A stretch of 64,000 nucleotides of DNA, taken from NCBI RefSeq assembly GCF_963921235.1, contig NW_026948255.1, positions 124,001 to 188,000 of the forward strand, given 5' to 3'. Under the pieces are notes generated by a model. It saw only the letters and a program-made list of their open reading frames with translations. It made no database searches and was not told where the DNA came from. The position numbers and the translations under genes are program-made. Origin of the DNA: Mobula hypostoma. Lineage: Eukaryota. Shown here in pieces: positions 1,693-46,229 of the stretch (position 1 is its first letter; each line of letters begins with the position of its first letter).

Positions 1693-4600
1693 TTAACATC
1701 TAGACGGACAATCAGTGATCACATTGTCTTTACCCTTAATATGAGTGATCAAAATATTGTACTCCTGTAACATTAAACTCCAATTTAATAATCTTCTATT
1801 TTTGTTTTTCATCTTACTTAAAAACACTAATGGATTGTGATCGGTATGAACTGTGAGTGGTTTATGCGTAGAATAAACATACACTTCAAAATGTTGCAAA
1901 GCTAAAACAAGAGATAACAATTCCTTTTTTTTATTGTTGAACAATTCATTTGATTTGCATTAAATTTCTTAGAAAAGATAAGCTACCGGACGATCAACTT
2001 CATCACCATCATCTTTTTGAAGCAACACTGCTCCTGCAGCTTCATCACTAGCATCTACAGCTAACGAAAATGTTTTTTCAAAGTCAGGAGATTTAAGTAC
2101 AGGTTGACGACATATTATAGCTTTCAATTTATCAAATACCTCCTGACAAAACTCTGCCCAAAGAAACTTCTCATTTTCTTCAAGAGATTAGTTAATGGGA
2201 GAGCAATGTTTGCAAGATCCTTACAAAACGTTCTGTAATATCCCACCATACGCAAGAATCTTCTGAGGGATTTTCTACCAGTGGGAGTGGGCACTTCCAA
2301 AATTGCCTGAACTTTTGCTTGAAAAGGTGCTAATTTTCCCTGCCCGACAACATAACCAAGGTAAGTCACTGTGGCATGCCCAAATTCACTTTTAGATAAG
2401 TTAATAGTTAAGTTAACTTCTGGAAGTCTCTCAAATAATTTCTCCACCGCCGCAATATGTGCTTTCACATATTATTCCCTGTAACCAGATCATCAATATA
2501 GGCATGGGTATCTTTTAATCCCTGAATCACGCTATTAATCATCCCCTGAAAAGTACTTGGTGCATTCTTCATCCCAAACGGAAGAACAAAATATTCGTAT
2601 AACCCAGAGGGGGTTACAAATGCTGAAATCTCTCTGCCTCTATCCGTCAATAGAACACACCAATAACCTTTTAACAAATCAATTTTTGTAAGGAATTTGG
2701 CCTGTTCAACTTTATCCACACAATCTTCTACTCTAGGCATTGGATATGCATCGATCTTTGTCACAGCATTCACTTTTCTGTAATCCATACAAAACCTAAT
2801 ACTATTGTCTGGCTTAGGCACCATAACACACGATGAACTCCAATTCTAATTAAAATGTCGTATAATATTATTTTCTAACATGTACTTAATTTCCTGTTCA
2901 GCAAGTTCACATTTCCCCCTGTTCATTCGATATGGATGTTGTTTTATAGGTTTTGCATCTCCCACATCTACATCATGAGTAGCTACGGTGGTTCTTCTAG
3001 GGACGTCTGGAAATAAATCTCTGTACTTAAAAAAAAAATGACTGTTTCATCTGTTCTCTCTGCTCCGGCTGTAAATGAGCTAATTTTTCATCAATGTTTT
3101 CTAGAAGTTTTGAATTTGGTAACCTGGCTGGAATAATGTTGGGATTAAAATGAGTTTCAGATGAATCCTCCATTAAGTTTTTATCAAGATCAGACTCATT
3201 ATTAATCACAACAGTCATAGTAGCAGCTTCTCTCTCATAATTTGGTTTTATCATATTTATATGACACAGCTGTGTTGCCTTTCTCTGATCTGGGGTTTTT
3301 AGCACGTAATCTACATCATCTACCTTAGATTTAATCTCATAAGGACCATGAAATTTGGCTTGTAATGGGTTCGTTTGCACTGCAAAAAGAAACAACACGT
3401 TATCTTCAGACTTAAATGACCTCATCCTAGCTTCCTTATCATACCAAGTCTTCATCTTCTCTTGAGCCAATTTTAAATTTTCCTTGGCCAAGCTACAAAC
3501 GTTATACAATCTTTCTTTAAATTTTGAAACATAATCTAGCAAATTAGTGTGTACTTATTTATTAATCCACTGTTCCTTCAACAAGGCCAAAGGTCCTCGA
3601 ACTCTATGTCCAAACACGTTCAAAAGGATTAAAACCTAATGATTCCTGTACTGCCTCCCTTACTGCAAAGAGTAGTAAATGTATACCTTCATCCCAGTCC
3701 TTTTCATTTTCCACACAATATGTCCTAATCATAGTTTTTAGTGTAGAATGAAATCTCTCCAAGGCTCCTTGTGATTCTGGAAGACAGGCTGAGGAAATAA
3801 CCTGTTTTACTCCCAGTTTATAAACTACCTGCTGAAACAATCCCGACATAAAATTACTACCTTGATCCGATTGTATTTCCTTACGCAACCCAAAATAAGT
3901 AAATAATTTTATGAGAGCCTTTGTCACAGAGTTGGCTGTTATATCCCTAAGAGGTTCTGCCTGTGGAAACCTAGACGCTGTGCACATAATGGTTAATAAA
4001 TATTGATGTCCAGTTTTAGTTTTTGGCAAAGGACTTACACAGTCTACAAAGATTTTTGAGAACGGCTCACCGAATACTGGAATTGGTTGCAGTTGGGCCA
4101 CTGGAGTAACCTGATTAGGTTTACCCACAATTTGACACGTATGACACGTTCTACAAAATGACACACATATTGTCTTAAACTAGGCCAATAAAAATGTTTA
4201 CAAACTTTGTTCATAGTTTTCTTCACACCTGAATGACCACCCAAAGGAATACTATGAGCCATTGTCTTTAATATCATTTCGGTAAATTTTAGGAACTACT
4301 ACCTAATGAATAACTTCCCATTCCTCACTAGCAGGAATTGTAGGGGATCTCCACTTTCTCATTAATACCTCCTTTTCTAAATAATATCCTACTGGTACTT
4401 TTTTAATTTCACTATCTGGAAGAGCTTGTTCTTTTAATTTAACTATCTCAGGATCTCTACCCTGCTCTGCTATCATTTCCTTTCGCGATAAAGACTAATC
4501 ATCCTGATCAGACTTACCACCAAAATCCTGATCAAATAATGTGGGTAAGAAAGTTTCTGATACATCCTCGAAATTCGAATCTTGATTTGAATGATCATGG

Positions 4601-5177
4601 GTAACAACTTCATTCTTTACATCAGTCTTGTTAGCCATAGCTCTTGTTACAACACAGGAAGAATCTGTGTTAGAATCCCTCTGTGGTTCCTCAAAGTTTG
4701 AATTTATTGGCAAATCCATTTCAGGAAAAACCTGTCCACCCGCTAAATCATTCCCTAACAAAAGAGAAACATCGTTCACAGATAAACTGGACTGTATTCC
4801 TACTTTAACAACCCTTGTAACTAATCCTGACCTTAAATTTATTCCATGTAAATATACTGGCATAAGGGCACTCCCAACTCCTCTTATATAATTCACCTCA
4901 CTAGTGTCAGACTCACCACTAACCTTTAGCTACTGTCTAATATTAGTGATTGAGAAGCTCCAGTAATTCTAAGCATCCTTATTGGTACTGAATTGGATTC
5001 CTTGTTCAAGGATACAACTCCTTCTGTTATAAAAGTTTCATATCCCTTCTTAACTTGGTCAGACTCTGACACATCTTCATTAGTATTTTCTGAACCCTGT
5101 TGCTTTACAGGTTTTTCAATATGCTGCACACAAGCATCGGGGACCACTTCTTTCTCTTCCTTTTCAATCGGAAGCAA
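1693..5177 (-). pseudogene. pol: pol pseudogene of the Gmr1-like element (protease, integrase, RT, RNase H)
   Basis: ORF fragments: 4926-5177 and 4495-4896 (PR), 4044-4277 and 3604-4164 (IN), 3027-3542 (IN C-terminus, GPY), 2465-2824 and 2124-2468 (RT), 1693-1944 (RNase H). Confidence 0.88.
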
Positions 5178-5181
5178 TTAG

Positions 5182-6323
5182 CTACTGCATGTCCAGGTGT
5201 CCTACAATAATTACTAATAATACCAGAATGTTTTTCCCTCCCATGTCTCCCTTCATCCTTACTTTTCTCACTAACTTCAGGTTTAATTTCTGGTTTACCT
5301 TGACTCTATGTGCTATTTTTCCTTTTAAGAATTTTACCTGGAGAAAATTTATTCTTGTGAATTCAAAAATACTCATCAGTTAATTTAGCAATCTCCTGCA
5401 ATGTAGCAGTGTCCCTTTCATTTAAATATGTTCTCGCTTCAACGGGAATGCTTCTTTTAAATTCTTCCAGTAAAATCAACACTTTTTAATTGATAATGCT
5501 CCCCATTCACATTTCTAGAGGAAACCCATCTCTCAAAACACATTGATTTCTCATAGGCAAATTCCCAATAAGTTTTTTCCACCGATTTCTTTAAACTTCT
5601 GAATCTTTCTCTATACGCTTCCGGAGCCATATCATATGTCTTTAATATATGCTGCTTAACAATATCATAATCCAGTGCTTGCTCAGCATGTAAAGCTGTA
5701 TAAACTTGCTGTGCCTTCCCTTTAATTACACTTTGTAACATCACTGGCCATTGGTCTTTCGGCCACTTTAAACTCAGAGCAACAGTTTCGAAATGCTAGA
5801 ACTATTTCTCCACTTCAGCTTCATTAAATGGAGGAGTCAAAATAACCTCACGACTAGCAATAAACTGTTTCGTAGAACCAGAAGACTGATTCCCGGACTT
5901 TAATTTCTGCATCTCCAGCTCAAATTTCCTCTGTTTTTCAGCTTCTTTTTCTTCAAATTCCCTTATTTTAATAGCCTCCCTAGCCTCGAATTCCTTCTGT
6001 TTATTTACAGCTTCTGACCGACACTTTTCCAAATCAGCTTCTAATTGTTTTAAATTTATTTGTTCAAGATGTAACTGCATTTCCAGCTTACTCATTGGAA
6101 ACTTATCTAACACCTCCTCATCAAACAATTTCAAATTAATATAACGCTCAGCGATTTGTCTTTGTATGAAATACTTCGTGGAATTCTTGCTAATTCCTTT
6201 AATAACAAACTTCCTAGCAATCTCCAATACCTCAGGTTTCCTCGCATTCTCTAAAGACCCCGAGTCAGATGTTTCCATAAACCCGTCAATATCAATTGTT
6301 GCTGAATACCAGTCACACACCAA
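5182..6323 (-). pseudogene. gag: gag pseudogene of the Gmr1-like element (coiled coil, SCAN-like capsid, zinc knuckle)
   Basis: ORF 5802-6323 is a charged coiled coil ending PPFNEAEVEK. ORF 5457-5744 reads LQSVIKGKAQQVY...DYDIVKQHILKTYDMAPEAYRERFR. Degenerate knuckle SNYCRTPGHAVANC near 5175-5220. Confidence 0.8.
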
Positions 6324-11274: not shown

Positions 11275-14103
11275 TTATTTACAGAGCTTCCCATTTAGTG
11301 TAAACAGGTACGTCGCCCCATTCTTCAGCTCCTCCCTGAATTTCCTCTGTGTCAGTCCATAGATACACGTGTTGGTGCAGGAACTGAGCAACATCAACAT
11401 ATACCCAGACTCTTGTAGGATAAATGTAGGTGTGTTGTAATATTTGTCAGTGAAAAACACGTTTACCGCTGCCCAGGTCATGGACTGCACAATATTGGTT
11501 ATCCACAATAATACGAAATTAGCAGATAGAGCGAACAACAAAACCATTGACTTTCTGCGGTTCTTAACCTCTGGATCACTTTGGCTGTCAGTATTTCTCC
11601 GAAGTCCACGGCGAACCATATTCGCTGCTATAATATATCTGGTGGTTAAAACATTGAACAGCAGAATTAAACCAAGTGGTAATAATGGGTTCATGATGGT
11701 GTCAAATTACTCGTAACCTCTCCACAGGGATGATGTATAGTACTCGGGTTTTGGAATGCACGTCCCTGGTTGAGCTGCAAAGTAAAATGGAAATGTCTGA
11801 ACACAGCTGCCTATGACCACTGCCACGATCACCACGGTCGCTGTTCTCTCCGGACAATATCGCGTCCGCAGCTTCTGAAGGCAGATCGCGACATAGCGAT
11901 CGAAAGTGAAAGCGACGGTCAGCCAAACGGAACAGTCCATGGCGGCAATAGTCAGAATAGGTCCCACACCACACAGCGGGGGTTTCACCAAAAAATCAGC
12001 ATACAGATAGAGAGCATTGATTTTATCCAATACAACACCAAAGACAACGACCATCAGATCTGCTGCCGCCATGGCCATGAGGTAGCGAGTGATACATTTG
12101 GACAGCCCACAGTTTCTGCGAGACAGGATCACAATTGCCGCTAAATTAACTGAGAAAAGACAGAAAAAAAAAGAAACATTTATTTCTTAATGTGTCTGGA
12201 ATAATCAGTGTGACTTTTGCTTGCAATGGGAAGGCTGGCAGTCCATATCGTGCCGTTTAGATAACAGTCCGCACTATTGTTCGTTTTACCAAAATGCATT
12301 ATCGTACATTTCCCAATACAGTATTCCATCTGTCACCTGTATTTCCATTATTCCAATATGTCTAAGTCCTGCTGCAATCGCATTGCTTCCTCAGCACAAC
12401 CTACCCCTCCACCTGTCTTTGTATCATCAGCAAATTTTGCCACAAAACCTTCAGTTAAATAATGGTAATCCTTGATGGTAGGAAGAAGGAAACCATGGCG
12501 CAAATTTGTTTCTTGGATGGCAAGTCAGCTAATAGTGATTTGTTCAGTGATCTTTGCTGGGCCAATTGTTGTGTGTCATATATGTCGAAGATTTGGATAA
12601 CAAAGTGCAAGACCCGGGGAATAAATTTACAGACAACAATATATGCCTAGTGGAGAGCGAGATCAGCTATCAAAAAGTAGATTGTTATCTTCATCAGTTC
12701 CGTAAGTTGGTCAAAGAATGGAATGGTAGAGTTTAATTAGGACACATGGAGGGTTATTTTTTCTGAAGGTTAAGCAAGGTAGGAGTTTCTCAGCGAACAC
12801 TGGGGCTCCGTGGAGTCTTTAGTATAGAGGGATCTTGTATTTCAAGAACTTGGTTCACTGGAAGTGGAATATAAGGTAGACAGGGTGGTTATGAAGCTCG
12901 GATCGATAGGTTTCATCAGTGACGGAACTGAGTAGAAAAGTTTGGATGGAGATGCAAATGCGCACGTCTCTGTTACGCTTGTTTCCCAGAACTGTGAGTG
13001 TTCTGGACGCCTTGTAGTAGGAAAGGCTCACACTGAATTAATCCAGAAACAATTTACCAGAATGTTTCCAGGATTTTAGAAACTGATATGCAGAGAGAGA
13101 TTGATCAGATCCGGACCATATTCGCTGCAGCACAGGTAGATGGGAGTTAATCACACAGAAGCACAGAAAACCACCAGGGTCAGAGACAGCATGAATTCCC
13201 CCAGTCTATTTTTTTACAGGGTTCAGGAATCCTGATCCTGACAGCGCGGGTATAAATTGAGTTGGAAAGGTTCAATAGGTATCTGAGGGGTAACATTTAA
13301 CCAAATGGGGCAATTAGGTGAAATATGCTGCGCGATGATGTGGCTGCGGCAGGCCCAATAATAAAAGGCAGTTGGACGGGCAAACGGTTATGAAGCGTTT
13401 GTAAGGTTGGGAGGCGAACGCTGAAACATTGTGCAGCATCTTATTTGGCATGGAATCTTTGGATCAGATATCTCTTTTCCGTGCTGCATAACTCTATCCC
13501 TCCAAAATAAATTATTATTCTTATTAATCCTAAATTCAGGGTATTTCCATAGAATACTTTTCCCTCTGGGTTGTTTTTACTTTTCCCCTGTATCCCCGAT
13601 GACCCTTCAGATAACAAACTCCAGTAGCTTGATAACCAAGGCAGCACATACCCTTTGGCTGAATACATAGGACAGCCACCATAACTATTCCAGGCAGAGG
13701 ACATCATGAATCAAACGCAATCACTTTGCATTAGAGTCTGAACCAGACTCAGGTTTATTATCAGCGGCAAATGTCGTGAGGGTCATTACAACCGAAACAT
13801 AAACGTGTAAGGTTATGATAAAGTACATTAAAGCAAACAAGAATAAAACAATAAAGGCGTCAAAGTCACGTAAATCATATTTTAAACAAATCCATGAAAC
13901 GCGCTTCTATTTTCATTATTTCCTTATTATGAGTTTATACTAAAAGACGCGAATAGCAACGTCCGCTCTAAATTGCAGCGCATAATTTAAAGACTACAGC
14001 ATGTCACACATCTCGGCATTTCCACGACCTTACCTGGAATAGCAACGGCTGCCAGTATGGGATAGTAAATAGAGACAATATAATAAATTGCTGAATATCC
14101 CAT
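11275..14103 (-). pseudogene. gpr139-like: GPR139/GPR142-like class A GPCR, probable pseudogene (exon 1 14034-14103, exon 2 11275-12149, in-frame TAA at 11707-11709)
   Basis: Exon 1 encodes MGYSAIYYIVSIYYPILAAVAIP and is followed by GTAAG. A pyrimidine-rich CAG acceptor sits at 12150-12152. Exon 2 reads VNLAAIVILSRRNCGLSKC...MAAADL...FDRYVAIC...SSCTNTCIY...FREELK. ORFs 11707-12132 and 11275-11694 are in the same frame, separated by one stop. Confidence 0.88.
12450..13460 (+). mobile_element. Degraded CR1 LINE 3' half inside the GPCR intron
   Basis: Remnants of LGxLL, xDD and FxRMxPG coding sequence and a CR1-like 3' UTR. Confidence 0.6.
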
Positions 14104-14144
14104 TTTCTGCCAGTAGCGGCGATCAGTCGTACGAAATGTGCCAA

Positions 14145-14231
14145 CTGTCCAGAAGCGCTGGTTCAATGAGCTCTTATACACCAGGAGCAATGTCCCTTTA
14201 GTTGCATTAGTTACAGGAGAGTGAACAAACA
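14145..14231 (-). promoter_or_regulatory. Core promoter of the minus-strand GPCR: bipartite element, TATA-like box and downstream motif
   Basis: Minus strand: TGTTTGTTCA-ctctc-CTGTAACTAA (14231-14207), GTGTATAA (14181-14174), CAGCGCTTCTGGACAG (14160-14145). All three motifs are shared with the paralog promoter. Confidence 0.7.
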
Positions 14232-14369
14232 ACCACTGTTTGTTTTGGTCTATTTGTACTCATTGTGACAATGGGTAACACAATTAACTCTTCGCGGGGA
14301 ACGACGAACAATGGATTCGATGTTCATTCAATGTAATTTAGAGGAGTCAGGGAAATAGTGTACCACAGC

Positions 14370-17300
14370 AAAAAAAAAAACTGGACCCATCAAATTCGTG
14401 TCAAATTCTGCCTGGACTTCCATACCGTTACATTCACGTACTTACCCAAATTTGTCTTAAATGTTACATCAAACCCATGTCCACCACTTTCGCTGGCAGC
14501 TAGTTGCACACTCTCCCCACTCTTAGAATAGAGCTTCCCATCAGTTTTCCCTTAAACATTTCACTTTTCACCCTTAACCTATAAACAATAGTTTTACTCT
14601 CACCCAAACAGTGACGAAAGCCTGCTTTTCTATACCCCTCATAATTTGTATGCCTCTCTGTAATCTCCCCACATTCTCCTACGCTCAAAATAACCTATTC
14701 AACCATTCCCTGTAAATCAGGTCTCCAAGTTTCGACCAAGACCTTCTAAACTTTCTCTGTATTTGTTCACTCTCAGTGATTTATTTGTGCAGGTAGTTGA
14801 TTAGAACTCCACACAATACTCCAAATTGATCCTCACCAAGGTACAGAGCAATTTCAGAATTACATCCTCAACTGAACAGTCTGATTTATCAATGCCTAAC
14901 TGCCCAAAATCTGCTTTACGACCCAATCTACCTACGGCGCCACCATCAATGAATAATGGATCTGTGTTCACAGTCCCTTTTGTTCCACTGCACAACTTAG
15001 TGCCGTACTATTCCATGTTTACGTCCTCCGCTGGTCAGTCCTCCCAGTGTGAAACATCCCACACGTCTGCACTAACAACAGAGCCAGCAGTGATCAGTGC
15101 AGTACTCAACTACTTTGAGGCCTCCATTCAGAGCAGCAACCATATAACTTCACTCTCTGGCTTCTACCGTAGTCATGTTGAATCCGGTTCACTACATCCC
15201 ACTGACAGAAAGGGACTGAACCGTTTGGACTAACCTCCCATGTGTGGTTTGTCAAAAGCCTTGTTAATGTCCAAGTCAACGAGATCCATTGACACGTCTT
15301 AGACCATAAGATCATAAGACAAAGGTGCAGAAGTCGGCCTTTCGGCCCATCGAGTCTCCTCCGTCATTTTATCATGAGATGATCCATTCTCCCATTTAGC
15401 CCCACTCTCCCGCCTCCTCTCCATAACCTTTGAAGCCCTGGCTACTCAGATACCTATCAATCTTTGCCTTAAATACACCCAATGATTTGGCCTCCACTGC
15501 CGCTGGTGGCAACAAATTCCACAGATTCACCACCCTCTGGCTAAAAGAAAACTTCGCATCGCTGTTCTGAATGGGCACCCTTCAATCCTTAAGAAATGCC
15601 CTCTCGTACACTCCCACACCATGGGAAACAACTTTGTCACATCCACTCTGTCCATGCCTTTCAACATTCGAAATGTTTCTATGAGGTCTCCCCTCATTCT
15701 TCTAAACTCCAAGGAATACAGTCCAAGAGCGTTCCTCAAACGTTCCTTATATGTTAACCCTATCATTCCCGGAATCATTCTAGTGAATCTTCTCTGAACC
15801 CACTCCAACGTCAGTGCAACCTTTCTTAAATAAGGAGCCCAAAACTGCACACAGTACTCCAAGTGAGGTCTTACCAGTGTCTTATAGAGCATTAGCATCA
15901 CATCCTTGATCCTATACTCTATTCCTCTAGAAATGAATGCCAACATTTTATTCGCCTTCTTCACCACCGACTCAACCTGGAGGTTAACCTTAAATGTATC
16001 CTGCACGTGGACTCCCAAGTCCCGTTGCATCTCAGAATTTTGAATTCTCTCCCCATTTAAATAATAGTCTGCCTGTTTATTTCTTCTAGCAGAGTGCATA
16101 ACCATACACTTTCCAACATTGTACTTCATTTGCCACTTCTTTTCTTATTCTCCCAATCTATCCAAGTCTCTCTGCAGACTCTCTGTTTTCTCAGCACCAC
16201 CGGCCCCTCCACCAGTCGTTGTATCATCAGAAAACTTAGCCACAAAGCCATCGATTCCATAATCCAAATTGTTGATGTATAACGGAAAAAGAAGCGGCCC
16301 CAACACGGACCCCTGCGGAACACCACTGGTAACCGGCAGCCAACTAGAATGGGATCCCTTTATTCCCACTCTCTGTTTCCTGCCAATCAGCCAATGCTCT
16401 ATCCACGTATGTAACTTTCCCGTAATTCCATGGGCTCTTATCTTGTTAAGCAGCCTCATGTGTGGCACCTTGTCAAAGGCCTTCTCAAAATCCAATACAC
16501 AACATCTACTGCATTCCCCTTGTCTAGCCGACTTGTAATTTTGTCAGATAGGATTTTTCTTTAAGGAAACCATGCTGAGTTCTGCCTATCTTGCCATATG
16601 CCTCCAGGTCCTCCGTAACCTCATCCTTGACAATTGAATCCAACAACTTCTCAACCACCGATGTCAAGCTAATAGGACTATAATTTCCTTTTTGCTTCCT
16701 TGCCCCCTTCTTAAATAGCGGAGTGACATTTGCAATCTTCCAGTCCTCCGGAACCATGCCAGAATCTATTGACTTTTGAAAGATCATTGCTAATGCCTCC
16801 GCACTCTCCACAGCTACTTCCTTCAGAATACGAGGTTGCATTCCATCTGGTCCAGGAGATTTATCGACCTTTAGACTATTCAGCTTCCTGAGTACTTTCT
16901 CTGTCGTAATTGTGACTGCGCACACTATTCATTCCTTGGGCCCTTAAGTGTCCGGTGTACTGCTGATGTCTTCCTCAGTGAAGACTGAGGCAAAATACGC
17001 GTTCAATTCCTCCGCCATCTCCTTATCCCCTATTACAATTTCTCCAGCATCATTTTCTATCGGTCCTATATCTACTCTCACCTGTCTTTTACTCTTTATA
17101 TATTTGAAGACGCTTTCAGTATCCTCTTTGATATTATTTGCTAGCTTCCTTTCATAGTTCATCTTTTCTATCTTAATGTCCTTTTTAGTTTATTTTTGTA
17201 AGCTTTTTAAAACTTCCCAATCCTCTGTCCTCCCACTAATTTTTTGCTTCCTTTTATGGCCCCTCCTTTGCTTTAACTTTGGCTTTGATTTCCCTTGTCA

Positions 17301-17720
17301 GCCACGGTTGCATCCTTATTCCATTCGAAAATGTCTTCTTTTTTGGAATATATCTTTATCAATTTTCTGGCTAACTCCTAGAAAAAGAGTTTGTAAGATT
17401 GGTTAGACACTCCGTAACACCCACAACAATAATTCCTTGTCTATCGAAATCCCGAACATTTATATGCTGTCCCTTCGAGTACCTTGAAATAATTAACCCA
17501 CTGCAGGCGTCAGACTCACTGGTCTATAATTTCCCGACATAATCCAAGCCCTTTCCGAGCAGAAACAATGACAATACCTGTTCTCCAGTCACCTGGCCTC
17601 TTAACCGTGATTAAGGATATTTTAAACATTTCAGCGGATACCCCAAAAATTAATTCACTTTCCTCTCGCAAGATTCGCGTGGACAACTTTTCAAGGAACT
17701 GGAAATTAGCCACCATAATT
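14370..17720 (-). mobile_element. Older CR1 (14370-15300 and ~17430-17720) interrupted by a younger CR1
   Basis: Degraded 3' end and LEYCV, KAFDK and NYRPVSLT remnants lie on both sides of the younger insertion. Confidence 0.6.
15302..17390 (-). mobile_element. CR1 LINE, 5'-truncated ORF2 (RT)
   Basis: ORFs with [47 protein letters not shown] and RPHLEYCVQFW. 3' tail of 8-bp repeats (ACCATAAG on +) at 15303-15320. Confidence 0.92.
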
Positions 17721-17739
17721 TGACTGATTACAGATTTAT

Positions 17740-18918
17740 CGGTCTATTTGTCTATATATCTGCCTATTTCTCTTTTTATTNNNNNNNNNNNNNNNNNNNN
17801 NNNNNNNNNNNNNNNNNNNNNNNNNNNNNNNNNNNNNNNNNNNNNNNNNNNNNNNNNNNNNNNNNNNNNNNNNNNNNNNNNNNNNNNNNNNNNNNNNNNN
17901 NNNNNNNNNNNNNNNNNNNNNNNNNNNNNNNNNNNNNNNNNNNNNNNNNNNNNNNNNNNNNNNNNNNNNNNNNNNNNNNNNNNNNNNNNNNNNNNNNNNN
18001 NNNNNNNNNNNNNNNNNNNNNNNNNNNNNNNNNNNNNNNNNNNNNNNNNNNNNNNNNNNNNNNNNNNNNNNNNNNNNNNNNNNNNNNNNNNNNNNNNNNN
18101 NNNNNNNNNNNNNNNNNNNNNNNNNNNCTGACTACCTAATTCCCCTTCAGGATTTCTGCGGGAGCAACATCATGACAGGTTTTAAAACTGCTGATTTCCC
18201 TCTTGTGTTCTCTTGAATGTTGTATACTCCTCNNNNNNNNNNNNNNNNNNNNNNNNNNNNNNNNNNNNNNNNNNNNNNNNNNNNNNNNNNNNNNNNNNNN
18301 NNNNNNNNNNNNNNNNNNNNNNNNNNNNNNNNNNNNNNNNNNNNNNNNNNNNNNNNNNNNNNNNNNNNNNNNNNNNNNNNNNNNNNNNNNNNNNNNNNNN
18401 NNNNNNNNNNNNNNTCTGACTACCTAATTCCCCTTCAGGATTTCTGCGGGAGCAACATCATGACAGGTTTTAAAACTGCTGATTTCCCTCTTGTGTTCTC
18501 TTGAATGTTGTATACTCCTCCCGTTTGTTATACATCTATCAATCTATCTGTCTATCTATCTATCTATCTATCTATCCATCCATCCATCCATCTATCTATT
18601 TTACTATCTATCTATCTGTCTATATATATGCCTATTTCTCTTTTTATTTATCTGNNNNNNNNNNNNNNNNNNNNNNNNNNNNNNNNNNNNNNNNNNNNNN
18701 NNNNNNNNNNNNNNNNNNNNNNNNNNNNNNNNNNNNNNNNNNNNNNNNNNNNNNNNNNNNNNNNNNNNNNNNNNNNNNNNNNNNNNNNNNNNNNNNNNTC
18801 TGACTACCTAATTCCCCTTCAGGATTTCTGCTGGAGCAACATCATGACAGGTTTTAAAACTGCTGATTTCCCTCTTGTGTTCTCTTGAATGTTGTATACT
18901 CCTCCCGTTTGTTATACA
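17740..18918. repeat. Tandem repeat: three near-identical ~105-bp units separated by (TCTA)n-type tracts and N runs
   Basis: The unit CTGACTACCTAATTCCCCTTCAGG...GTATACTCCTC starts at 18128, 18416 and 18800. TCTA/TCCA repeats are visible at 18535-18654. Confidence 0.9.
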
Positions 18919-19089
18919 GCCCCGTCTGCCTAACCAAAGTAAATATACCCCTTGAAACGGAAAGTACCGTAACAATGGTGGCCGTTTGAGGTTCTGGTGA
19001 CGTCATCGTCCAGAATCCACAGCTCCTTTGGAAAAATGCATCTTTTGCCCTGTTAATCCATCAAATATAAGGTCTTTCGAAAAGATCTT

Positions 19090-19385
19090 TCACAACGGAA
19101 GAAATATCGGGATTTATACTGTTCCCGAAGGAGCGGAGGAGTTGTTGATGATGGAGTTTGTAGAAAAGTTGCCGCGGAAAGCGCTGGAGATTTCCTCGAC
19201 TATGGAGACTGAGATTGAGAGGGCGCATCGTGCGCTCGTCCCGAGGCTTCCCCAGGACGGAGAAAGTAAGTCGCGGTCCATGCTACTTAGATTCCTTCGA
19301 TTCAAGAGAAAGGCGGAGATTCTGCGAAGGGCCTGGGGTAGGTAGAGGGCGTTTTGGAAAGAGAATTTAATACATTTCGATCAAG
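19090..19385 (+). mobile_element. L1-type LINE ORF1 fragment (RRM region)
   Basis: NIGIYTVPEGAE...EFVEKL...EIERAHRAL...RSMLLRFLRFKRKAEILRRAW matches the L1 ORF1 (Transposase_22) pattern. Confidence 0.75.
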
Positions 19386-19669
19386 ATTAGTCCCCTTAAC
19401 CTGCTGATTTATTTTGAGTCCATAAAAGTGAATTACCCGCAATCCAATGTGCTTATCGGATTTTTTTTTACATTCCACCTGCACCACATTCATCAGTTCC
19501 CAATTTCCATCTGTTTATCCATTTCCGAACCCACGCGGACTCTGGCAATGCTGTTGTTGCTGTCCATCCAGTCCTGTGGGTAGGGATGTTGTGTCTAGGT
19601 CTGTGTGTTTCCCTGCAGGATCCTGTGTACAGAATACAATGGAAAGATTGACTGTTTGTGGTTCAGTGT

Positions 19670-19934
19670 AACAGTTCTATTGGAAATCTGTGTCTGCATC
19701 TCGGGCTTAGTGTGGGACTGAATGTCTCTGCTGTCTGAGAAGGTGGAACTAAAGAGCGGCTGGTCTCTTGGTGCTCTGTAACGCACCTTGTGTGTTCTGT
19801 ACCTTGTCCCTGGACAGGAGTGAATAACGGATTTGAATGAAGCCTTTCCCTGTGGGTAGGAGAGGAAATAGGGTGAGTGAAGGACAGGGAAACGTTAGAC
19901 GGCTGTGTGAAGCGGCCGGTGCAGCCACTGTTAG

Positions 19935-19981
<47 letters not shown>

Positions 19982-21560
19982 CACATAACACAGCACACAG
20001 ACACGCACACACACAAACAGATCTAACGTTGTCATTCACTTCCAGCCATCCTATATGTATTTATATCCAGGTTAGAGTAGATTGTTTTATCACTTAACCT
20101 GTCTGTCCATTCCATTGAAGTCTAAAACATTTCATCTCAATTTTCGTTTGAACTCTGGCAGATTTGAGACGTTCATCAAATTCTATGACATCAGCAACAT
20201 CAGAAACTGCTGGAGGAACTCGGAAGAGATTTTCAGCACAGTTTGTCTGTTGACTTGCAATTCCAGCATCTGCACATTTTTAGTGTCTGTACACCAGCAA
20301 CCGGTTTTATATCGTGACTAACACGTCCTTGTTCTGTCCATTGTATTTCTGTCCGTAGCTGTGTTTCCGTGTTGTGTCTGTGTGTCTCCGAGTGAGTCTG
20401 TGTGTGTGTGTCTGTGAAGGAGTTGAAGCAATGAAGGACAGTTCATACTGGGAAACCGCAGGGCAGATGTTGGAATCGGTCGGACTGTGTTGGCGATCTC
20501 CGTTTACAGATGTGTAATTAGCCAACAGAAACCTGAAATCTGTAAATGCGGCTGGTACGTGACAAAGCTCATTGGAAATGTATGTCTGGGTTTGGGCTCA
20601 TTACGGGACTGACTGTCTCTGCTGTCTGAGTCTGCGGAAATGGTGACCTGCCAGTATCGCTGTGCTCTGTATCACACCCTGTGTGTGACAGAAGCGGCTA
20701 CTCTGTCCCTTGGGCCTCACGGGAGGGAATATCGGAGTTGAAGGAAATCTTTGTCTGTGTGTAGGAGGAGGAAACTGGGTTAGTAGGGGAGAGGTAAATG
20801 TCAGACGGTTGTGCGAAACCAGTGCNNNNNNNNNNNNNNNNNNNNNNNNNNNNNNNNNNNNNNNNNNNNNNNNNNNNNNNNNNNNNNNNNNNNNNNNNNN
20901 NNNNNNNNNNNNNNNNNNNNNNNNNNNNNNNNNNNNNNNNNNNNNNNNNNNNNNNNNNNNNNNNNNNNNNNNNNNNNNNNNNNNNNCTTGTCATTCACTA
21001 TCAGCCATGCTGCATCTGTTCATCTCCCAACTGAGAGGACTATTTGTCTTATTTAAGCTGTCAGTCCATTCTTTTGCAGATGAAACATTTTTGGTTCAAT
21101 TTTCATTTGGCTTCTGTCTGATTTCAGACGCCCATAGTAGTCTATTACATCAGTAGCATCACAAAAGGCCGGAGGAGTTCAGTAATGTGNNNNNNNNNNN
21201 NNNNNNNNNNNNNNNNNNNNNNNNNNNNNNNNNNNNNNNNNNNNNNNNNNNNNNNNNNNNNNNNNNNNNNNNNNNNNNNNNNNNNNNNNNNNNNNNNNNN
21301 NNNNNNNNNNNNNNNNNNNNNNNNNNNNNNNNNNNNNNNNNNNNNNNNNNNNNNNNNNNNNNNNNNNNNNNNNNNNNNNNNNNNNNNNNNNNNNNNNNNN
21401 NNNNNNNNNNNNNNNNNNNNNNNNTGGAGGGGAGATGTTGGAGCAATTGGAAATTGAAGTTCTAAATGGGAAACCGCAGAGCAGCAGTTTGCGTTCGATG
21501 GTTCGCCAAATATAAACGTGAAATCTGTAACTGCAGCTACTCCGTGACAAAGCTCAGTCT
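19670..21560. repeat. Old tandem duplication (two ~0.9-1.0 kb units) upstream of the intact GPCR
   Basis: Collinear matches: GGGACTGAxTGTCTCTGCTGTCTGAG (~19714 and ~20605), TTGTCATTCACT (~20029 and ~20988), GGGAAACCGCAG (~20450 and ~21468). Microsatellites or N runs sit at equivalent positions. Confidence 0.75.
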
Positions 21561-21686
21561 TTGACATTAGAATTTAGACATGATTCCACCAGACGAGTCA
21601 TTGCTGAGGTAATGCTCAGGAATTTTGATATGTTTGTCTTGAATCGGCCGAATACTTACATCAGAGACAATAGTGTTGAATTAAAG

Positions 21687-21805
21687 TGTTTGTTCAAGTA
21701 ACTGTAACTAAGAAAGTTAGTCAGGGGTATATCCGTATCTCTGGAGACCGATCCAGTGTATAAATCAGGGCCGTTTAGAATGCATCAGCTCAGCGTTTCT
21801 GCCAG
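21687..21805 (+). promoter_or_regulatory. Core promoter of the plus-strand GPCR: bipartite element, TATA box and downstream motif
   Basis: TGTTTGTTCA-agtaa-CTGTAACTAA (21687-21711), GTGTATAAA (21756-21764), CAGCGTTTCTGCCAG (21791-21805); ATG at 21850. Confidence 0.72.
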
Positions 21806-21849: not shown

Positions 21850-23388
21850 ATGGTGAATACTGTCATCTTCCGAATAGAAGAAGTTTACTATCCTTTAATT
21901 TCAGTCTTTGGAATTCCCGGTAAGCCACAGAGGCAGCTTCCGTTGGTCAGAACTGAACTTCAATTCCAATGTTGTTATTATTTCTGTCGCTCTCAGGGGC
22001 ACTTCGAGAACAATTCTGAGAAGACTTTAACTGTTTTTCCACATATTCTGTTTTGCCTGGATGGGTGTTTCCGCGCATTCCATGTTTCTGTTCCGTCCTT
22101 CGGTGTCCTGTCGCTGACAGGGAGAACCATGGAAGTTTATGATTGTCTAATGGAACAATCCCTCTATCACCGTCCGGATTTATTCATTGCAACTAGATGA
22201 GACGGCGAAGGCGTCGGTAGAAAATATTTAATTCACTATCGATTCCGAGGAGGGTATACACAGTTACAGATTTTCGCTCTCACTTTTTATTCCGGTAATC
22301 AGTAAGAAATCGGGATTCAGATCATATTGACTTTAGTTTACCGACCAAACTCGTTTTTCTACGCCGCGTGTGCACGCCAGCTAAATGCAACAGAAAAGTG
22401 GAAATAGTACAGGACCCCCTCAAACCGTTGCATTGACTTTTGCTCAGGAATTTCTCAATTTGCCGTTCCCTCTCTCTCTCTTCCAGCGAACTTGGTGGCG
22501 GTTATGATCCTGTCCCGGGGAAAATGTGGTCTCTCCAAATGTGTCACTCGCTACCTGGTGGGAATGGCAGCGGCCGATCTCCTGGTCGTTATCTCGGATC
22601 CACTGCTGAGGTGGACTGCAGAGATTTATTTTCCCCGATCATTCTTGTTCATCACTCCCGTGTGCAGACTCCGTCAGTGGCTGATTTTTGCGAGCACTGC
22701 GACCTCCATCTGGCTGACTGTCGCTTTCACCGTCGATCGATTTGTAGCGATTTGCTGTCAGAAGATGAAAACAAAATATTGTACCGAGAGAACGGCGGCT
22801 GTGATTATGGGGACAGTGAGTGCGCTGGCCTGTTTGGAGACTGTCCCCTGGTACTTTGCATATGAGCGTAGAGAAATAATTGATGGTGTTCCCTGGTTTT
22901 GTGTTCTCTCATCGAGCTACAAAATCTCTCTATCATGGGCGGCATTTGAGATGTTTCACCGTATTTTAACCCCCTGTGTCGCTTTCTTTCTGATTTTGCT
23001 GTTCAATATTCAGACTGTCAGGAGGATTCTGGCAGCCAGTCGAGCCCGCAGGGGGCTCCGGGGACAAAAGAGTGGAGAGAATGACAAGGACCGGGAGATG
23101 GAGAGCAGACATAAATCCATCGTTTTGCTCTTCAGCGTAACCGCTAGTTTCATACTGTTGTGGGTAACACAGGTGGTATTTTATATCTACCAACGGATTT
23201 CAAAGAGTTTTATTTATTCTGCCACTGACCCCCGTTACATCACAGTAAAGACAGCAGGAATGCTGCAAGTTCTGAGTTCCTGCACCAACACGTGTATTTA
23301 CGCCCTGACTCAGAGCAAATTCCGAGAGGAACTCAAGAATGCGTTGAAATATCCATTGAATCGGATTTTGAAATTCATGAAACGTTAG
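21850..23388 (+). CDS. gpr139-like: GPR139/GPR142-like class A GPCR, intact, two coding exons (21850-21919, 22487-23388), 323 aa
   Basis: Exon 1 encodes MVNTVIFRIEEVYYPLISVFGIP, donor GTAAG at 21920, acceptor TTCCAG ending 22486, phase-1 join gives P-A-N-L-V. Seven hydrophobic segments with MAAADL, VDRFVAIC, TM3/ECL2 cysteines, SSCTNTCIY and helix 8 FREELK. AATAAA at 23390-23395. Confidence 0.92.
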
Positions 23389-34554: not shown

Positions 34555-36050
34555 GCCCTGGCAGAAATATTTAAAATGTCGCTGTCTATGGGTGAAGTGC
34601 CGGAGGATTGGAGAGTGGCTCATGTTGTTCCGTTGTTTAAAAAAGGATCGAAAAGTAATCCGGGAAATTATAGGCCGGTGAGTTTAACGTCAGTAGTAGG
34701 TAAGTTATTGGGGAGTACTAAGAGACAGAATCTACAAGCATTTGGAAGAGGGGCTTATTAGGGAGAGTCAACATGGCTTTGTGCGTGGTAGGTCATGTTT
34801 GACCAATCTGTTGGAGTTTTTCGAGGAGGTTACCAGGAGAGTGGATGAAGGGAAGGCAGTGGATATTGTCAACATGGACTTCAGTAAGGCCTTTGACAAG
34901 GTCCCGCATGGGAGGTTAGTTAGGAAAATTCAGTCGCTAGATATACATGGAGAGGTGGTAAATTGGATTAGACATTGGCTCGATGGAAGAAGCCAGAGAG
35001 TGGTGGTAGAGAATTGCTACTCTGAGTGGAGGCCTGTGACTAGTGGTGTGCCACAGGGATCAGTGCTGGGTCCATTGTTACTTGTCATCTATATCAATGA
35101 TCTGGATGATAATGTGGTAAATTGGATCAGCAACTTTGCTGATGATACAAAGATTGGAGGTGCAGAAGACAGTGAGGAAGGTTTTCAGAGCCTGCAGAGG
35201 GATTTGGACCAGCTGGAAAAATGGGCTGAAAAATGGCAGATGGAGTTTAATACAGACAAGTGTGAGGTATTGCACGTTGGAAGGACAAACCAACGTAGAA
35301 CATACAGGGTTAATGGTAAGGCACTGAGGAGTGCAGTGGAACAGAGGGATCTGGGAATACAGATACAAAATTCCGTATGAGTGTCGTCACAGGTAGATAG
35401 GGTCGTAAACAGAGCTTTTGGTACATTGGCCTTTATTAATCAAAGTGTTGAGTATAAGAGCTGGAATGTTATGATGAGGTTGTATAAGGCATTGGTGAGG
35501 CCGAATCTGGAGTATTGTGTTCAGTTTTGGTCACCAAATTACAGGAAGGGTATAAATAAGGTTGAAAGAGTGCAGAGAAGGTTTACAAGGATGTTGCCGG
35601 GACTTGAGAAACTCAGTTACAGAGAAAGGTTGAATAGGTTAGGACTTTATTCCCTGGAGCGTAGAAGAATGAGGGGAGATTTGATAGAGGTATGTAAAAT
35701 TATGATGGATATAGATAGAGTGAATGCAAGCAGGCTTTTTCCACTGAGGCAAAGGGAGAAAAAAAAACAGAGGACATGGGTTAAGGGTGAGGGGGGAAAA
35801 GTTTAAAGGGAACATTAGTGGGGGCTTCTTCACACAGAGAGTGGTGGGAGTTTGGAATGAGCTGCCAGACGAGGTGGTAAATGCGGGTTCTTTTTTAACA
35901 TTTAAGAATAAATTGGACAGATACATGGATGGGAGGTGTATGGAGGGATATGGTCCGTGTGCAGGTCGGTGGGACTAGGCAGAAAATGGTTCGGCACAAC
36001 CAAGAAGGGCCAAAGGGCCTGTTTCTGTGCTGTAGTTTCTATGGTTCTAT
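34555..36050 (+). mobile_element. CR1 LINE, 5'-truncated, young
   Basis: ORFs 34576-35978 cover DWRVAHVVPLFKKG through RPNLEYCVQFW and the C-terminus; tail TTTCTATGGTTCTAT. Confidence 0.93.
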
Positions 36051-40912: not shown

Positions 40913-43900
40913 AAACATAGAAAAACTATAGCACAGAAACAGGCCTTTTGGCCCTTCTTGGCTGTGCCGAACTATTTTCTGCCAAGTCCCACTGACCTGC
41001 ACACGGACCATATCCCGCCATACACCTCCCATCCATGTATCTGTCCAATTTATTCTTAAATGATAAAAAATAACCCGCATTTACCACCTCATCTAGCAGT
41101 TCATTCCATACTCCCACCACTCTCTGTGTGAAGAATGCCCCCCAATGTTCCCTTTAAACTTCTCCCCCTTCACCCTTAACCTATGTCCTCTGGTTTTTTT
41201 CTCCCCTTGCCTCAGTGGAAAAAGCCTGCTTGCATTCACTCTATCTATACCCATCATAATGTTATATACCTCTATCAAATCTCCCCTCCTTCTTCTACGA
41301 TTCAGGGAATAAAGTCCTAACCTATTCAACCTTTCTCTGTAACTGAGTTTCTCAAGTCCTGGCAACATCCTTGTAAACCTTCTCTGCACTCTTTCAACCT
41401 TATTTATATCCTTCCTGTACTTTGGTGACCAAAACTGAACACAATACTCCAGATTCAGCCTTACCAATGCCTGACACAACCTCATCATAACTTTCCAGCT
41501 CTTATACTATATACTTTGATTAATAAAGGCCAATGTACCAAAAGCTCTCTTTACGACCCTATCTACCTGTGATGCCACTTTTAGGGAATTTTGTATCTGT
41601 ATTTCCAGATCCCTCTGTTCTACTGCACTCCTCAGTGCCTTACCATTTACCCTGTATGTCCTACCTTGGTTTGTCCTTCCAAAGTGCAATACCTCACACT
41701 TGTCTGTATTAAACTCCATCTGCCATTTTTCAGCCCTTTTTCCAGCTGGTCCAAGTCCCTCTGCAGGCTCTGAAAACCTTCCTCACTGTCTACTACACCT
41801 CCAATCTTTGTATCATCAGCAAACTTGCTGATCCAATTTACCACATTATCATCCAGATCATTGATATAGATGACAAATAACAATGGACCCAGCACTGATT
41901 CCTGTGGCACACCACTAGTCACAGGCCTCCACTCGGAGAAGCAATTTTCCGCTACCACTCTTTGGTTTCTTCCATTGAGCCAATGTCAAATCCAATTTAC
42001 CACCTCTCCATGTATACCCGTATACCCAGCGACTGAATTTTCCTAACTAACCTCCCATGCGGGACCTTGTCAAAGGCCTTACTGAAGTCCATGTAGATAA
42101 CATCCACTGCCTTCCCTTCATCTACTTTCCTGGTAACCTCCTTGAAAAACTCCAATGGATTGGTCAAACATGACCTACCACGCACAAAGCCATGTTGACT
42201 CTCCCTAATAAATCCCTGTCTATTCAAATGCTTGCAGATTCTTTCTCTTAGTACTCCCTCCAATAACTGACCCACTACCAACGTCAAACCTACCGGGTTA
42301 TAATTTCCCTGATTACTTTTCGATCCTTTTTTAAACAACGGAACAACATGAGCTACTCTCCAATCCTCCGGCACCTCACCCGTAGACATCAACATTTTAA
42401 TTATATCTGCCAGGGCGCCTGCAATTTCAACACTAGTCTCCTTCAAGGTCCGAGGGAATACCCTGTCAGGTCCTGGGGATTTATCCACTTTAATTTGCCT
42501 CAAGATAGCAAGCACCTCCTCCTTTTCAATCTGTAGAGTTTCCACGATCTCACTACTTGTTTCCCTTAATTCTGTAGACTTCATGCCGGTTTCCTTAGTA
42601 AATACAGACGCAAAAAACCCATGTAAGATCTCCTCCATTTCTTTTGGTTCCGCATATAACCAACCACTCTGATCTCCTAGAGGACCAATTTTATTCCTTA
42701 CAATCCCTTTACTCTTACTATACCTGTAAAAGCTCTTTGGAGTATCCTTCACTTTGACTGCCAAGGCAACCTCATGTCTTCTTTTAGCCCTCCTGATTTC
42801 TTTCTTAAGTATTTTCTTGCACTTTTTATACTCCTCAAACACCTTATTTACTCTCTGTTTCCTATACATGCCATACAACTCTCTCTTCTTCTTTATCAGA
42901 GTTGCAATATCCCTTGAGAACCAAGGTTCCTTATTCCTATTCACTTTGTCTTTAATACTGACAGGAACATACAAGCTCTGCACTCTCAAAATTTCTCCTT
43001 TGAAGGCTTCCCACTTACCGATCACATCTTTGCCAGAGAACAACCTGTCCCAATCCACGTTTTTTAGATCCTTTCTCATTTCTTCAAATTTGGTCTTCTT
43101 CCAGTTCAGAGCCTCAACCCTAGGACGAGGTCTATCTTTGTCCATGATCAAGTTGAAACTAATGGTGTTATGATCACTGGAACCAAAGTGCTCCCCTACA
43201 CACACTTCTGTCACTTTTGCCCTAACTCGTTTCCTAACAGGAGATCCAATATTGCATCCCCTCCAGTTGGTACCTCTATATATTGATTTAGAAAACTTTC
43301 CTGAACACAATTTACAAACTCTAAACTATGTAGACCTCTAACAGTATGGGAGTCCCAACCAATATATGGAGAATTAAAATCCCCTACCACCACAACTTTA
43401 TGTTTCCTGCAGTTGCCTGCTATCTCTCTGCAGATTTGCAACTTCAATTCTCGCTGACTATTGGGTAGTCTATAATACAACCCCACTAATGTAGAACATA
43501 GAACATAGAATAGTACAGCACAGTACAGGCCCTTCGGCCCACAATGTTCTGCCGACCCGCAAACCATGCCTCCCATATAAGCCCCCACCTTAGATTCCTC
43601 CGTATACCTGTCTAGTAGTCTCTTAAACTTCACTAGTGTATCTGCCTCCACCACTGACTCAGGCAGTGCATTCCACGCACCAACCACTCTCTGAGTAAAA
43701 AAACCTTCCTCTAATATCCCCCTTGAACTTCCCACCCCTTACCTTAAAGCCATGTCTTCTTGTATTGAGCAGTTGTGCCCTGGGGAAGAGGCGCTGGCTA
43801 TCCACTCTATCTATTCCTCTTATTATCTTGTACACCTCTATCATGTCTCCTCTCATCCTCCTTCTCTCCAAAGAGTTAAGCCCTAGCTCCCTTAATCTCT

Positions 43901-45545
43901 GATCATAATGCATACTTTCTAAACCAGGCAGCATCCTGGTAAATCTCCTCTGTACCCTTTCCAATGCTTCCACATCCTTCCTATAGTGAGGTGACCAGAA
44001 CTGGACACAATACTCCAAGTGTGGCCTAACCAGAGTTTTATAGAGCTGCATCATTACATCGCGACTCTTAAACTCTATCCCTCGACTTATGAAAGCTAAC
44101 ACCCCATAAGCTTTCTTAACTACCCTATCCACCTGTGAGGCAACTTTCAGGGATCTGTGGACATGTACTCCGAGATCCCTCTGCTTCTCCACACTACCAA
44201 GTATCCTGCCAGTTACTTTGTACTCTGCCTTGGAGTTTGTCCTTCCAAAGTGTACCACCTCACACTTCTCCGGGTTGAACTCCATCTGCCACTTCTCAGC
44301 CCACTTCTGCATCTTAGCAATGTGGCCAGACATTTCCTGTTTCTCAGCTCCACCCATAAGGACTCAGTAGATAAACCTTCTGATCTGTCCTGCCTGAGCA
44401 CTGCTGTAACATTTTCCCTGACAAGCAGTGCTACACCCCCGCCCCCGAACCTTTCATTCTCTGCCTCGATCACATCTGAAACTTCGGAACACTGGAATAT
44501 TAAGCTGCCAGTCCTGCCCCTCCTGTAGCCAAGTTTCACTAATTGCTATAACGTCATAATTCCACGTGTTAATCCACGCCCTCAGCTCGTCTGCCTTCCC
44601 CGCGATACTACTAGCATTGAAATATATACAACTTCAGAAGATTTTTACCACCACTCACAACATTTCGATTTGCCGCTTTGCTTGAACTTTTAACATAATT
44701 TATTTTCACCCCAGCCACACTGTCAGCTCTGGCACTCTGGTTCCCATCCCCCTGCAAATATAGTTTAAAGCCTCCCCAACAGCACTAACAATCCTCCTGG
44801 AAAGGATATTGGTCCTCTTGTAGTTCAAGTGTAACCCGTCTCTCTTGTACAGGTCCCACCTGCCCCAGAAGAGGTCCCAATGATCCTGAAATCCGAAACC
44901 CTGTTCCCTACACTAATTCCTCAGCCACTTGTTCATCCTCCAGAGCATCCTATTCCTACCCTCACTGGCACGTAGCACAGGTAGCAATCCTGAGATTACT
45001 ACCCTCGAGATCCTGCTTTTCAACTTCCTCCCAAGCTCTCTATACTCACTGTCCAGGACCTCCTCACTTTTCCTTGCTATGTAATTGGTACCGATGTGCA
45101 CCACGACATCTGGCTGATCACCCTCCCACTTCAGAATGTCATGCAAGCGATCAGAGACATCCTTGACCCTAGCACCCGGGAGGCAACAAACCATCCTAGA
45201 TTCTCTGTCACGACCACAGAACCTCCTGTCTGTACCTCTAACTATAGAGTCCCCTATCACTACCGCTCTCCTCTTTTTCCACCCTCCCTTCTGCACCGCA
45301 GAACCAGATTCAGTGCCAGAGATCTGGCTGCTGCAGCTTGCCCCAGGTAAGTCTTCCCCCCACCCCCCCCAACAGTATCCAATGCGGTATACTTGTTGTT
45401 GAGGGGAATGGCCACAGGGGAACCCTACTCTGCCTGCCCTTTCCTCTTCCCTCACCTGACAGTGACCCAATTTCCTGTGCTCTGCTCCTTTGGCGTAACT
45501 ACCTCCCTGTAGCTACTATCTATAATCTCCTCAATCTCCCAAATG
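40913..45545 (-). mobile_element. Near-full-length CR1 LINE (ORF1 esterase, ORF2 endonuclease-RT) with a nested CR1
   Basis: ORF1 AVVIGDSIVRG...PGARVKDV...VVVHIGTN (SGNH esterase, 44913-45470); endonuclease GDFN and SDHN; RT 41093-43310; tail AAACATAGAAAA. Confidence 0.93.
43493..44318 (-). mobile_element. CR1 3' fragment inserted into the endonuclease region of another CR1
   Basis: Has its own AGAACATAG tail and is flanked by AATGT at 43488-43492 and 44319-44323. The host sequence rejoins when it is removed. Confidence 0.88.
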
Positions 45546-45606
45546 ATCTGCTACCAGTTTTCTGAATAAATTATGAAAGAAAATAAAACAATGATGCTGA
45601 GTGGTT

Positions 45607-46183
45607 CATAGAAACATAGAAACATAGAAAATAGGTGCAGGAGTAGGCCATTCGGCCCTTCGAGCCTGCACCGCCATTTATTATGATCATGGCTGATCAT
45701 CCAACTCAGAACCCAGCCTTCCCTCCATACCCCCTGACCCCTGTAGCCACAAGGGCCATATCTAACTTCCTTTTAAACATAGCTAATGAACTGGCCTCAA
45801 CAGTTTGCTGTGGCAGAAAATTCCACAGATTCACCACTCTCTGTGTGAAGAAGTTTTTCCTAATCTCGGTCCTAAAAGGCTTCCCCTCTATCCTCAAACT
45901 GTGACCCCTCGTTCTGGACCTCCCCAACATCGGGAACAATCTTCCCGCATCTAGCCTGTCCAATCCCTTTAGGATCTTATACGTTTCAATCAGATCCCCC
46001 CTCAATCTTCTAAATTCCAACGAGTACAAGCCCAGTTCATCCAGTCTTTCTTCATATGAAAGACCTGCCATCCCAGGAATCAATCTGGTGAACCTTCTTT
46101 GTACTCCCTCTATGGCAAAGATGTCTTTCCTCAGATTAGGGGACCAAAACTGCACACAATACTCCAGGTGTGGTCTCACCAAG
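45607..46183 (-). mobile_element. CR1 3' fragment, young
   Basis: (CATAGAAA)n tail; LVRPHLEYCVQFWSP...GRSRTRGH uninterrupted. Confidence 0.9.
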
Positions 46184-46229
46184 GGATGGGCAGTGAGGGA
46201 ACCCAGTGATTGAAACATGACTTTTTCAG

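Follow-up and report, generated by a model that had tools for sequence, protein, structure and literature searches.

The window examined here is a 64,000-nucleotide stretch of Mobula hypostoma DNA (contig NW_026948255.1), in which two receptor genes of rhodopsin type (Pfam 7tm_1), termed genes A and B, lie inverted as a head-to-head pair about 7.5 kb apart and carry in their promoters the same two-part element, TGTTTGTTCA-N5-CTGTAACTAA (hereafter, the box). This element is present twice, at 14231–14207 on the minus strand in front of gene A and at 21687–21711 on the plus strand in front of gene B. When up to three mismatches were allowed, these were its only two matches in the 64 kb, against an expected number of 0.01, and none of 100 shuffled sequences gave two. 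All 20 bases flanking the spacer are the same in both copies, and the five spacer bases (CTCTC in gene A and AGTAA in gene B) all differ.

Gene B consists of a coding exon 1 at 21850–21919 (+), with its ATG at 21850, and an exon 2 at 22487–23388 (+); the spliced product of 323 amino acids is intact and matches Pfam 7tm_1. Gene A has its coding exon 1 at 14034–14103 (−), with the ATG at 14103 and a donor GT at 14033, and its exon 2, encoding the seven-transmembrane (7TM) body, at 11275–12149 (−). The first-pass annotation of this DNA pictured gene A as a receptor gene, but a single in-frame TAA (11709–11707, −) interrupts its otherwise open exon 2 at a codon that reads CTG (Leu) in a skate relative. 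Gene A as assembled is thus no intact receptor gene; it may be a pseudogene or a null allele, or the stop may stem from an assembly error, and yet it retains the consensus promoter box.

The two proteins, judged by eye in that annotation to be about half identical, showed 45–46% identity. Fourfold sites at identical amino acids carry the same base in 43% of cases, and an ungapped comparison of the 100 bases preceding the box gave 23% identity. Because of these low values, genes A and B are taken, on sequence comparison, to be old duplicates whose neutral sites are near saturation. Five assembly gaps (17781–21424) all fall within the intergenic spacer between both promoters, the closest ending 262 bases upstream of the gene B box, so that the motifs, TATA boxes and exons are untouched and only the distance between genes A and B is uncertain.

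The box and the proximal promoters of genes A and B

In gene A, the first half of the box (TGTTTGTTCA, with a forkhead-type core) occupies 14222–14231 (−) and the second half (CTGTAACTAA) 14207–14216 (−), after the spacer at 14221–14217; in gene B, the first half, again exact, lies at 21687–21696 (+) and the second at 21702–21711 (+), after the spacer at 21697–21701. Both boxes are followed by GTGTATAA, located at 14174–14181 (−) in gene A, 50 bases past the box start, and at 21756–21763 (+) in gene B, where TATAAAT begins 91 bases before the ATG as it does in skate and whale-shark promoters. The GTGTATAAGG of the gene A TATA region is retained in a skate relative of gene A (locus L008). Between the TATA box and the ATG, both genes have CAGCG(C/T)TTCTG (14160–14150 in A and 21791–21801 in B), which falls in the likely start-site regions CAGCGCTTCTG of gene A (14150–14160, −; initiator-like and aligning with TCAGAG/TCACAG blocks elsewhere) and TCAGCGTTTCTG of gene B (21790–21801, +; by sequence alignment). 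Judging from these sequences, GTGTATAA is the TATA box and CAGCG(C/T)TTCTG probably the start region.

The spaced motif in both genes and the succession of GTGTATAA and CAGCG(C/T)TTCTG before the ATG were found exactly as the first-pass annotation had described them. Its further remark, that the introns and other flanks show no visible similarity, held in part: the ungapped identity given above agrees with it, as does the finding that the box is the sole inverted match between genes A and B outside the coding exons, but the comparison of more sequences revealed further conserved blocks in the proximal promoter, which are described below. A MAFFT alignment of both window promoters missed the box because the distances from box to TATA box differ between genes A and B, and a comparison anchored on the box was used instead. 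Another exact TGTTTGTTCA in the window, at 25091 (+), was rejected, as it has neither a second half nor an exon 1 downstream.

Distribution of the box among elasmobranch promoters

Nine further promoters of the receptor family, from skates, sawfish and whale shark, were added from smaller assemblies, making 11 together with those of genes A and B. The short first coding exon was located in each locus by the pattern M..YYP..IPG followed by GT, and the box start is expressed as the distance from its first base to the ATG. The box was found in nine of the 11 elasmobranch promoters (devil ray, three skate species and whale shark), with the first half as the same 10-mer or a one-base variant, and it points towards the gene in all carriers. 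In the whale shark (Rhincodon), it reads TGTTTGTTCA-AGTTG-GTGTTACTAA (L004, start −159), TGTTTGCTCA-ACTTG-GTTTTACTAA (L006, −160) and TGTTTGTTCA-AGGAG-TTGTGACTAA (L007, −164). Among the skates, the copies are TGTTTGTTCC-ATCAA-CTGTAACCAA in Rhinoraja (L003, −162), TGTTTGTTCC-GTGA-GTGTCACTAA in Amblyraja (L005, −162), TGTTTGTTCA-GTGGC-CTGTGGCTGA, with an exact first half, in the gene-A clade member of Rhinoraja (L008, −138), and TGTTTGTTTA-AAGTA-CCATAACTAA in a deep-branching gene of Leucoraja (L009b, −143).

At a further Leucoraja locus (L001), the first exon was not found within 2.9 kb, and the pseudogenised, more distant paralogs in L004, L006 and L002 have no readable first exon. One extra candidate site in L006, at 3461 (−), was rejected as a chance match with no exon downstream.

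Conservation, position and rarity of the box

When the promoters were compared with the box as the anchor and one near-duplicate omitted, the first half showed a mean pairwise identity of 0.93 and the second half one of 0.59, against 0.31 in the spacer and 0.28–0.41 in the ten-base blocks flanking the box. Thus, the first half, with the consensus TGTTTGTTC(A/C), is nearly invariant, and the second half, with the consensus nTGTnACTAA, often followed by T, is looser than the exact match within the window suggests. An unbiased count of words in the 250 bases before the ATG gave TGTTTGTT as the commonest shared 8-mer, present in eight of the 11 promoters and ranking above TATA words; among 300 control sets, each made up of 11 pieces of 250 bases taken at random from the same DNA, a word was never found in more than four pieces.

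The position of the box is likewise constant. Six promoters representing three orders (ray, skates and whale shark) have the box start between −159 and −164 and the TATA box at −91/−92, counted from the ATG; members of the gene-A clade have shorter distances for both. The box accordingly begins about 70 bases upstream of the TATA box, or 50 in gene A.

The first-pass annotation had named two findings that would speak against its idea, namely that the motif is missing from most other paralogs or is equally frequent away from these genes, for example as part of a repeat. Neither was observed: seven of the nine added promoters carry the box, and a two-block matrix scan of both strands of 580 kb (the window and all loci) gave nine sites at 24.7–33.0, each thus at least 24.7, against 18.9 for the best other site, a separation that is partly circular, as the matrix was derived from those same nine sites. 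The best other site is a skate repeat with the first half alone. Collectively, the box has the features of a family-specific proximal promoter element: it occurs in many paralogs, is conserved above its flanks, keeps its orientation and position, and is rare elsewhere in the 580 kb.

The skate repeat, TGTTTGTTTGTTTGTTCCTGAAC(T/C)(A/C)CAGCCAA, contains the first half of the box at 17634 in L003 and at 13477 and 9766 (−) in L008; one of these copies is on the opposite strand to the L008 promoter box and only about 100 bases away from it on the upstream side. The remainder of the window is mostly retroelement debris (3027–6323, 15527–16129, 34742–35380, 41997–46335 and 54485–59452). Reverse transcriptase or integrase domains (RVT_1, rve) were detected in four of the six open reading frames tested, and the frame at 15527–16129, sited between both receptor promoters, gave no Pfam match.

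The receptor family and the age of the box

A database search with gene B returned more than 2000 relatives, and the 120 best of those listed were all from sharks and rays, the closest being a Mobula hypostoma protein with 95% identity. Most of the listed relatives bear the name "probable G-protein coupled receptor 139", and each species contributes many. A protein tree unites the elasmobranch genes in a single clade (100/100 support) that is separate from the GPR139-like proteins of teleosts and coelacanth. Because the 120 best matches listed are all from sharks and rays and the elasmobranch clade is separate, the sequences indicate that these genes are not orthologs of vertebrate GPR139, and that the family is a lineage-specific expansion of sharks and rays. 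In the literature on GPR139 in sharks, elasmobranchs and cartilaginous fish, we found neither this family expansion nor the motif described.

Three parts of this tree have carriers of the box: the gene-A clade (ray and skate), the gene-B clade (ray, skate and whale shark) and the deeper-branching skate gene. Because of this distribution, the box is, as far as the tree indicates, older than the shark-ray split; the ancestor shared by these subfamilies already had it in its promoter, and a few lineages later lost it or let it degrade.

In whale shark and sawfish, intact genes have decayed family copies as neighbours, each with numerous stops and frameshifts (L004, 6043–6904 and 20469–21094, −; L006, 19521–20374, −; L002, 7143–8021, +), a pattern that fits birth-and-death turnover. 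The public models for several members have odd first or last exons (L002, 10001–10063; L005, 10001 onward; L008, 30756–30989) and skip the canonical short first exon (L002, 10867; L005, 9288), and the model of L008 carries an extra tail of 78 residues, taken from 15 kb downstream; such exon models are probably annotation errors.

Further elements of the proximal promoter

Besides the box, the promoters share TCACTGGAG between the box and the TATA box, CTCTATAAAT, and AGAA directly before the ATG. An initiator-like TCA(G/C)AG block, the probable start site, follows the TATA box by about 25–30 bases and is itself followed by the ATG after about 60 bases. Directly upstream of the box, promoters of the gene-B clade have a TGA(C/T)GTAA-like (bZIP-type) word; words of this type (TGACGTAA, TGATGTAAT or TGACGCAA) were located at 9825–9838 in L003, 9829–9841 in L004, 9828–9840 in L006, 9117–9125 in L005 and 9803–9813 in L009. 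The word is also present in the divergent skate paralog that has no box. At the same place, gene B has TGAATTAAAG, and gene A has nothing similar.

Immediately before the ATG, a pyrimidine run with CAG was seen in gene A (14104–14110) and within the last 20 bases in L004, L005, L006 and L007. Pile-ups and joints of DNA contigs from a related species near 21677–21681 hint that paralog similarity begins at the box, and they are too mixed to interpret.

A candidate forkhead site in the first half

The first half of the box conforms to the forkhead core consensus TRTTTRY and contains TGTTTGTT, exact in eight of the nine sites. The same core is found within the published consensus sites of FOXD3 (NAWTGTTTRTTT; PMC8369840) and FOXJ1 (WDTGTTTGTTTA; PMC4168999). 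Thus, the forkhead-type core proposed by the first-pass annotation agrees with published binding sites at the level of sequence, and the first half fits a candidate FOXD3/FOXJ1-type forkhead site. The agreement is not complete: position 9 of the first half is C in eight of the nine sites, as against T in the FOXD3 and FOXJ1 consensus, which argues against this assignment, and the 5′ flank has no clear W-D preference. HMG/Sox-type factors, which read TTTGTT, are possible alternative candidates for the first half. The second half was compared with the homeodomain TAAT (contained in ACTAAT), an RFX half-site, and Myb, SIX and nuclear-receptor half-site motifs, and none gave a consistent fit.

Evaluation of alternative explanations

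From the sequence evidence, we regard it as likely that the box is a cis-regulatory module maintained by selection in the proximal promoters of the "probable GPR139" receptor family, whose expansion is confined to sharks and rays. Several observations weigh against it. The sample comprises 11 promoters out of a family of hundreds, and two of them, those of the sawfish gene in L002, where MAFFT puts TCTTTGATGA at the corresponding place, and of the divergent skate paralog L009a, have no recognisable box; nor does the region upstream of a teleost GPR139-like relative (L010). The second half varies at several positions, its fifth base taking all four letters, so that calling the box bipartite depends chiefly on its fixed spacing and on ACTAA. 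Moreover, an acceptor-like YnCAG stands right before the ATG in many promoters, so that some transcripts may start further upstream, which would make the box intronic. Finally, the sequencing runs guessed to be RNA yielded low-depth contigs that are unspliced across exon-intron borders and also cover the upstream DNA, and these contigs thus carry no information on transcription. The proposal of a conserved composite site was accordingly supported by the conservation across paralogs and species and by the rarity of the box, but has to be modified in that the second half is much looser than supposed and two members lack the box.

Among the other explanations, the one that survives best is that the box is transcribed or intronic, situated in a 5′ leader or near the end of an intron after a non-coding exon, and acts at the RNA level or as an intronic enhancer. 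The acceptor-like pyrimidine run and CAG before the ATG in L004, L005, L006 and L007 would suit this arrangement, as would the public gene models, which include no 5′ untranslated region for these genes. On the other hand, the TATA box at a fixed −91/−92 and the initiator-like TCAGAG block, both downstream of the motif, are what a promoter would have, the box and promoter region gave no match in Rfam, and gene B and L002 have no AG before the ATG. We consider this explanation unlikely.

It is still less probable, and in our judgement very improbable, that the box is a neutral leftover of a duplicated ancestral promoter without present function, the identity within the window being due to luck or slow decay. 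The genes are indeed paralogous and their promoters homologous, and the stop codon of gene A implies that one copy of the box may front a dead gene. Against neutral decay, the first half is 93% identical between paralogs that split before sharks and rays, whereas the flanks and the spacer are at random identity (23–31%) and the fourfold sites near saturation, and three orders have kept the box in its place with respect to both the TATA box and the ATG.

A short gene-conversion patch between the head-to-head neighbours could also have made the two boxes identical, for they are inverted and about 7.5 kb apart, and they agree at 20 of 20 bases, whereas the copies of other species differ by 1–4 bases. 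Such a tract would have copied the spacer too, yet all five spacer bases differ; nothing else matches between both promoters; and both window boxes equal the family consensus, which was found independently in skates and whale shark. We find conversion hardly credible. Least of all do we believe that the box is part of some dispersed repeat or of a transposon fragment lying near the genes by chance, for although the window is full of retroelement pieces (RVT_1, rve) and TGTTTGTTCC also occurs in the skate repeat, in L003 and in L008 and again 100 bases from the L008 promoter, that repeat has no second half, neither the window nor the other loci (about 226 kb) contain a further two-part box, and all real copies of the box keep a fixed distance to a first coding exon.

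Proposed function of the box

If the box is a selected promoter module, a forkhead-class factor may bind its first half and a partner its second half, held at a fixed spacing; the rigid spacer of free sequence would point to two proteins or domains reading the halves together. Both factors could then recruit or license the TATA-dependent start complex, and the outcome, by analogy with olfactory receptor promoters, would be one common cell-type-specific expression programme for the whole family. We infer that the box lies upstream of the start site and is bound by protein, and the choice of proteins and cells named here is equally a prediction from sequence. The co-regulation of GPR139-like genes that the first-pass annotation had inferred from the box is supported as far as sequence can support it.

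A more specific idea is that sharks and rays have a sensory, probably chemosensory, receptor repertoire that has not been described, and that the box is the promoter code its members share; a forkhead-class terminal selector and its fixed-spacing partner would then activate GPR139-like genes, or help to choose among them, in one specialised cell type. This we put forward tentatively, as possible and rather doubtful. Classical olfactory receptor genes are strikingly few in sharks, according to the catshark genome paper (PMC11979771). Were the chemosensory interpretation true, the family might compensate for the very small olfactory receptor (OR), TAAR and V1R repertoires of sharks and rays, and the motif would provide a handle on the expressing cell type and its factor.

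As far as we found, the motif has not been described, and it would be a new example of a shared promoter element in a multigene receptor family. The persistence of a 10-base core since before the shark-ray split, at a fixed place in otherwise randomised promoters, suggests that the family is under one transcriptional control. The box could serve as bait for the binding factor, as part of a minimal promoter for reporter lines that would show which cell type expresses the family, and as a sequence tag separating live from dead genes in genome annotation, and it is chiefly valuable as a way into a large and unstudied receptor repertoire of sharks and rays, comprising hundreds of GPR139-like genes.

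Comparison with known receptor gene families

Olfactory receptor promoters contain an O/E-EBF site and a homeodomain-Lhx2 site near the start, which are thought to tie the family to one cell type. They resemble the promoters described here in that both belong to a very large, fast-evolving 7TM family and share two short sites within otherwise unalignable sequence. The sites themselves are different, an O/E site and TAATTA in the former as against TGTTTGTTCA and TGTnACTAA in the latter, which moreover front receptors that are not of the OR type and are not known to be expressed in olfactory tissue, and the 5-base spacing and the distance to the TATA box are rigid in the box family.

In the vomeronasal V1R genes, promoter blocks are conserved among fairly recent duplicates and over long stretches. 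Both there and in the box family, paralogous receptor genes retain recognisable promoter blocks after duplication; unlike in V1R, the part that survives in the box family is a 10-base core, kept across 45%-identical paralogs and between shark and ray, with the flanks randomised.

Bona fide GPR139 is an orphan receptor of the brain and habenula. It shares with the box family the rhodopsin-class 7TM structure and the short first coding exon, and the databases name the family after it. In contrast to GPR139, however, the box family is a shark-and-ray expansion that is distantly related to it, and the teleost GPR139-like relative has no box upstream.

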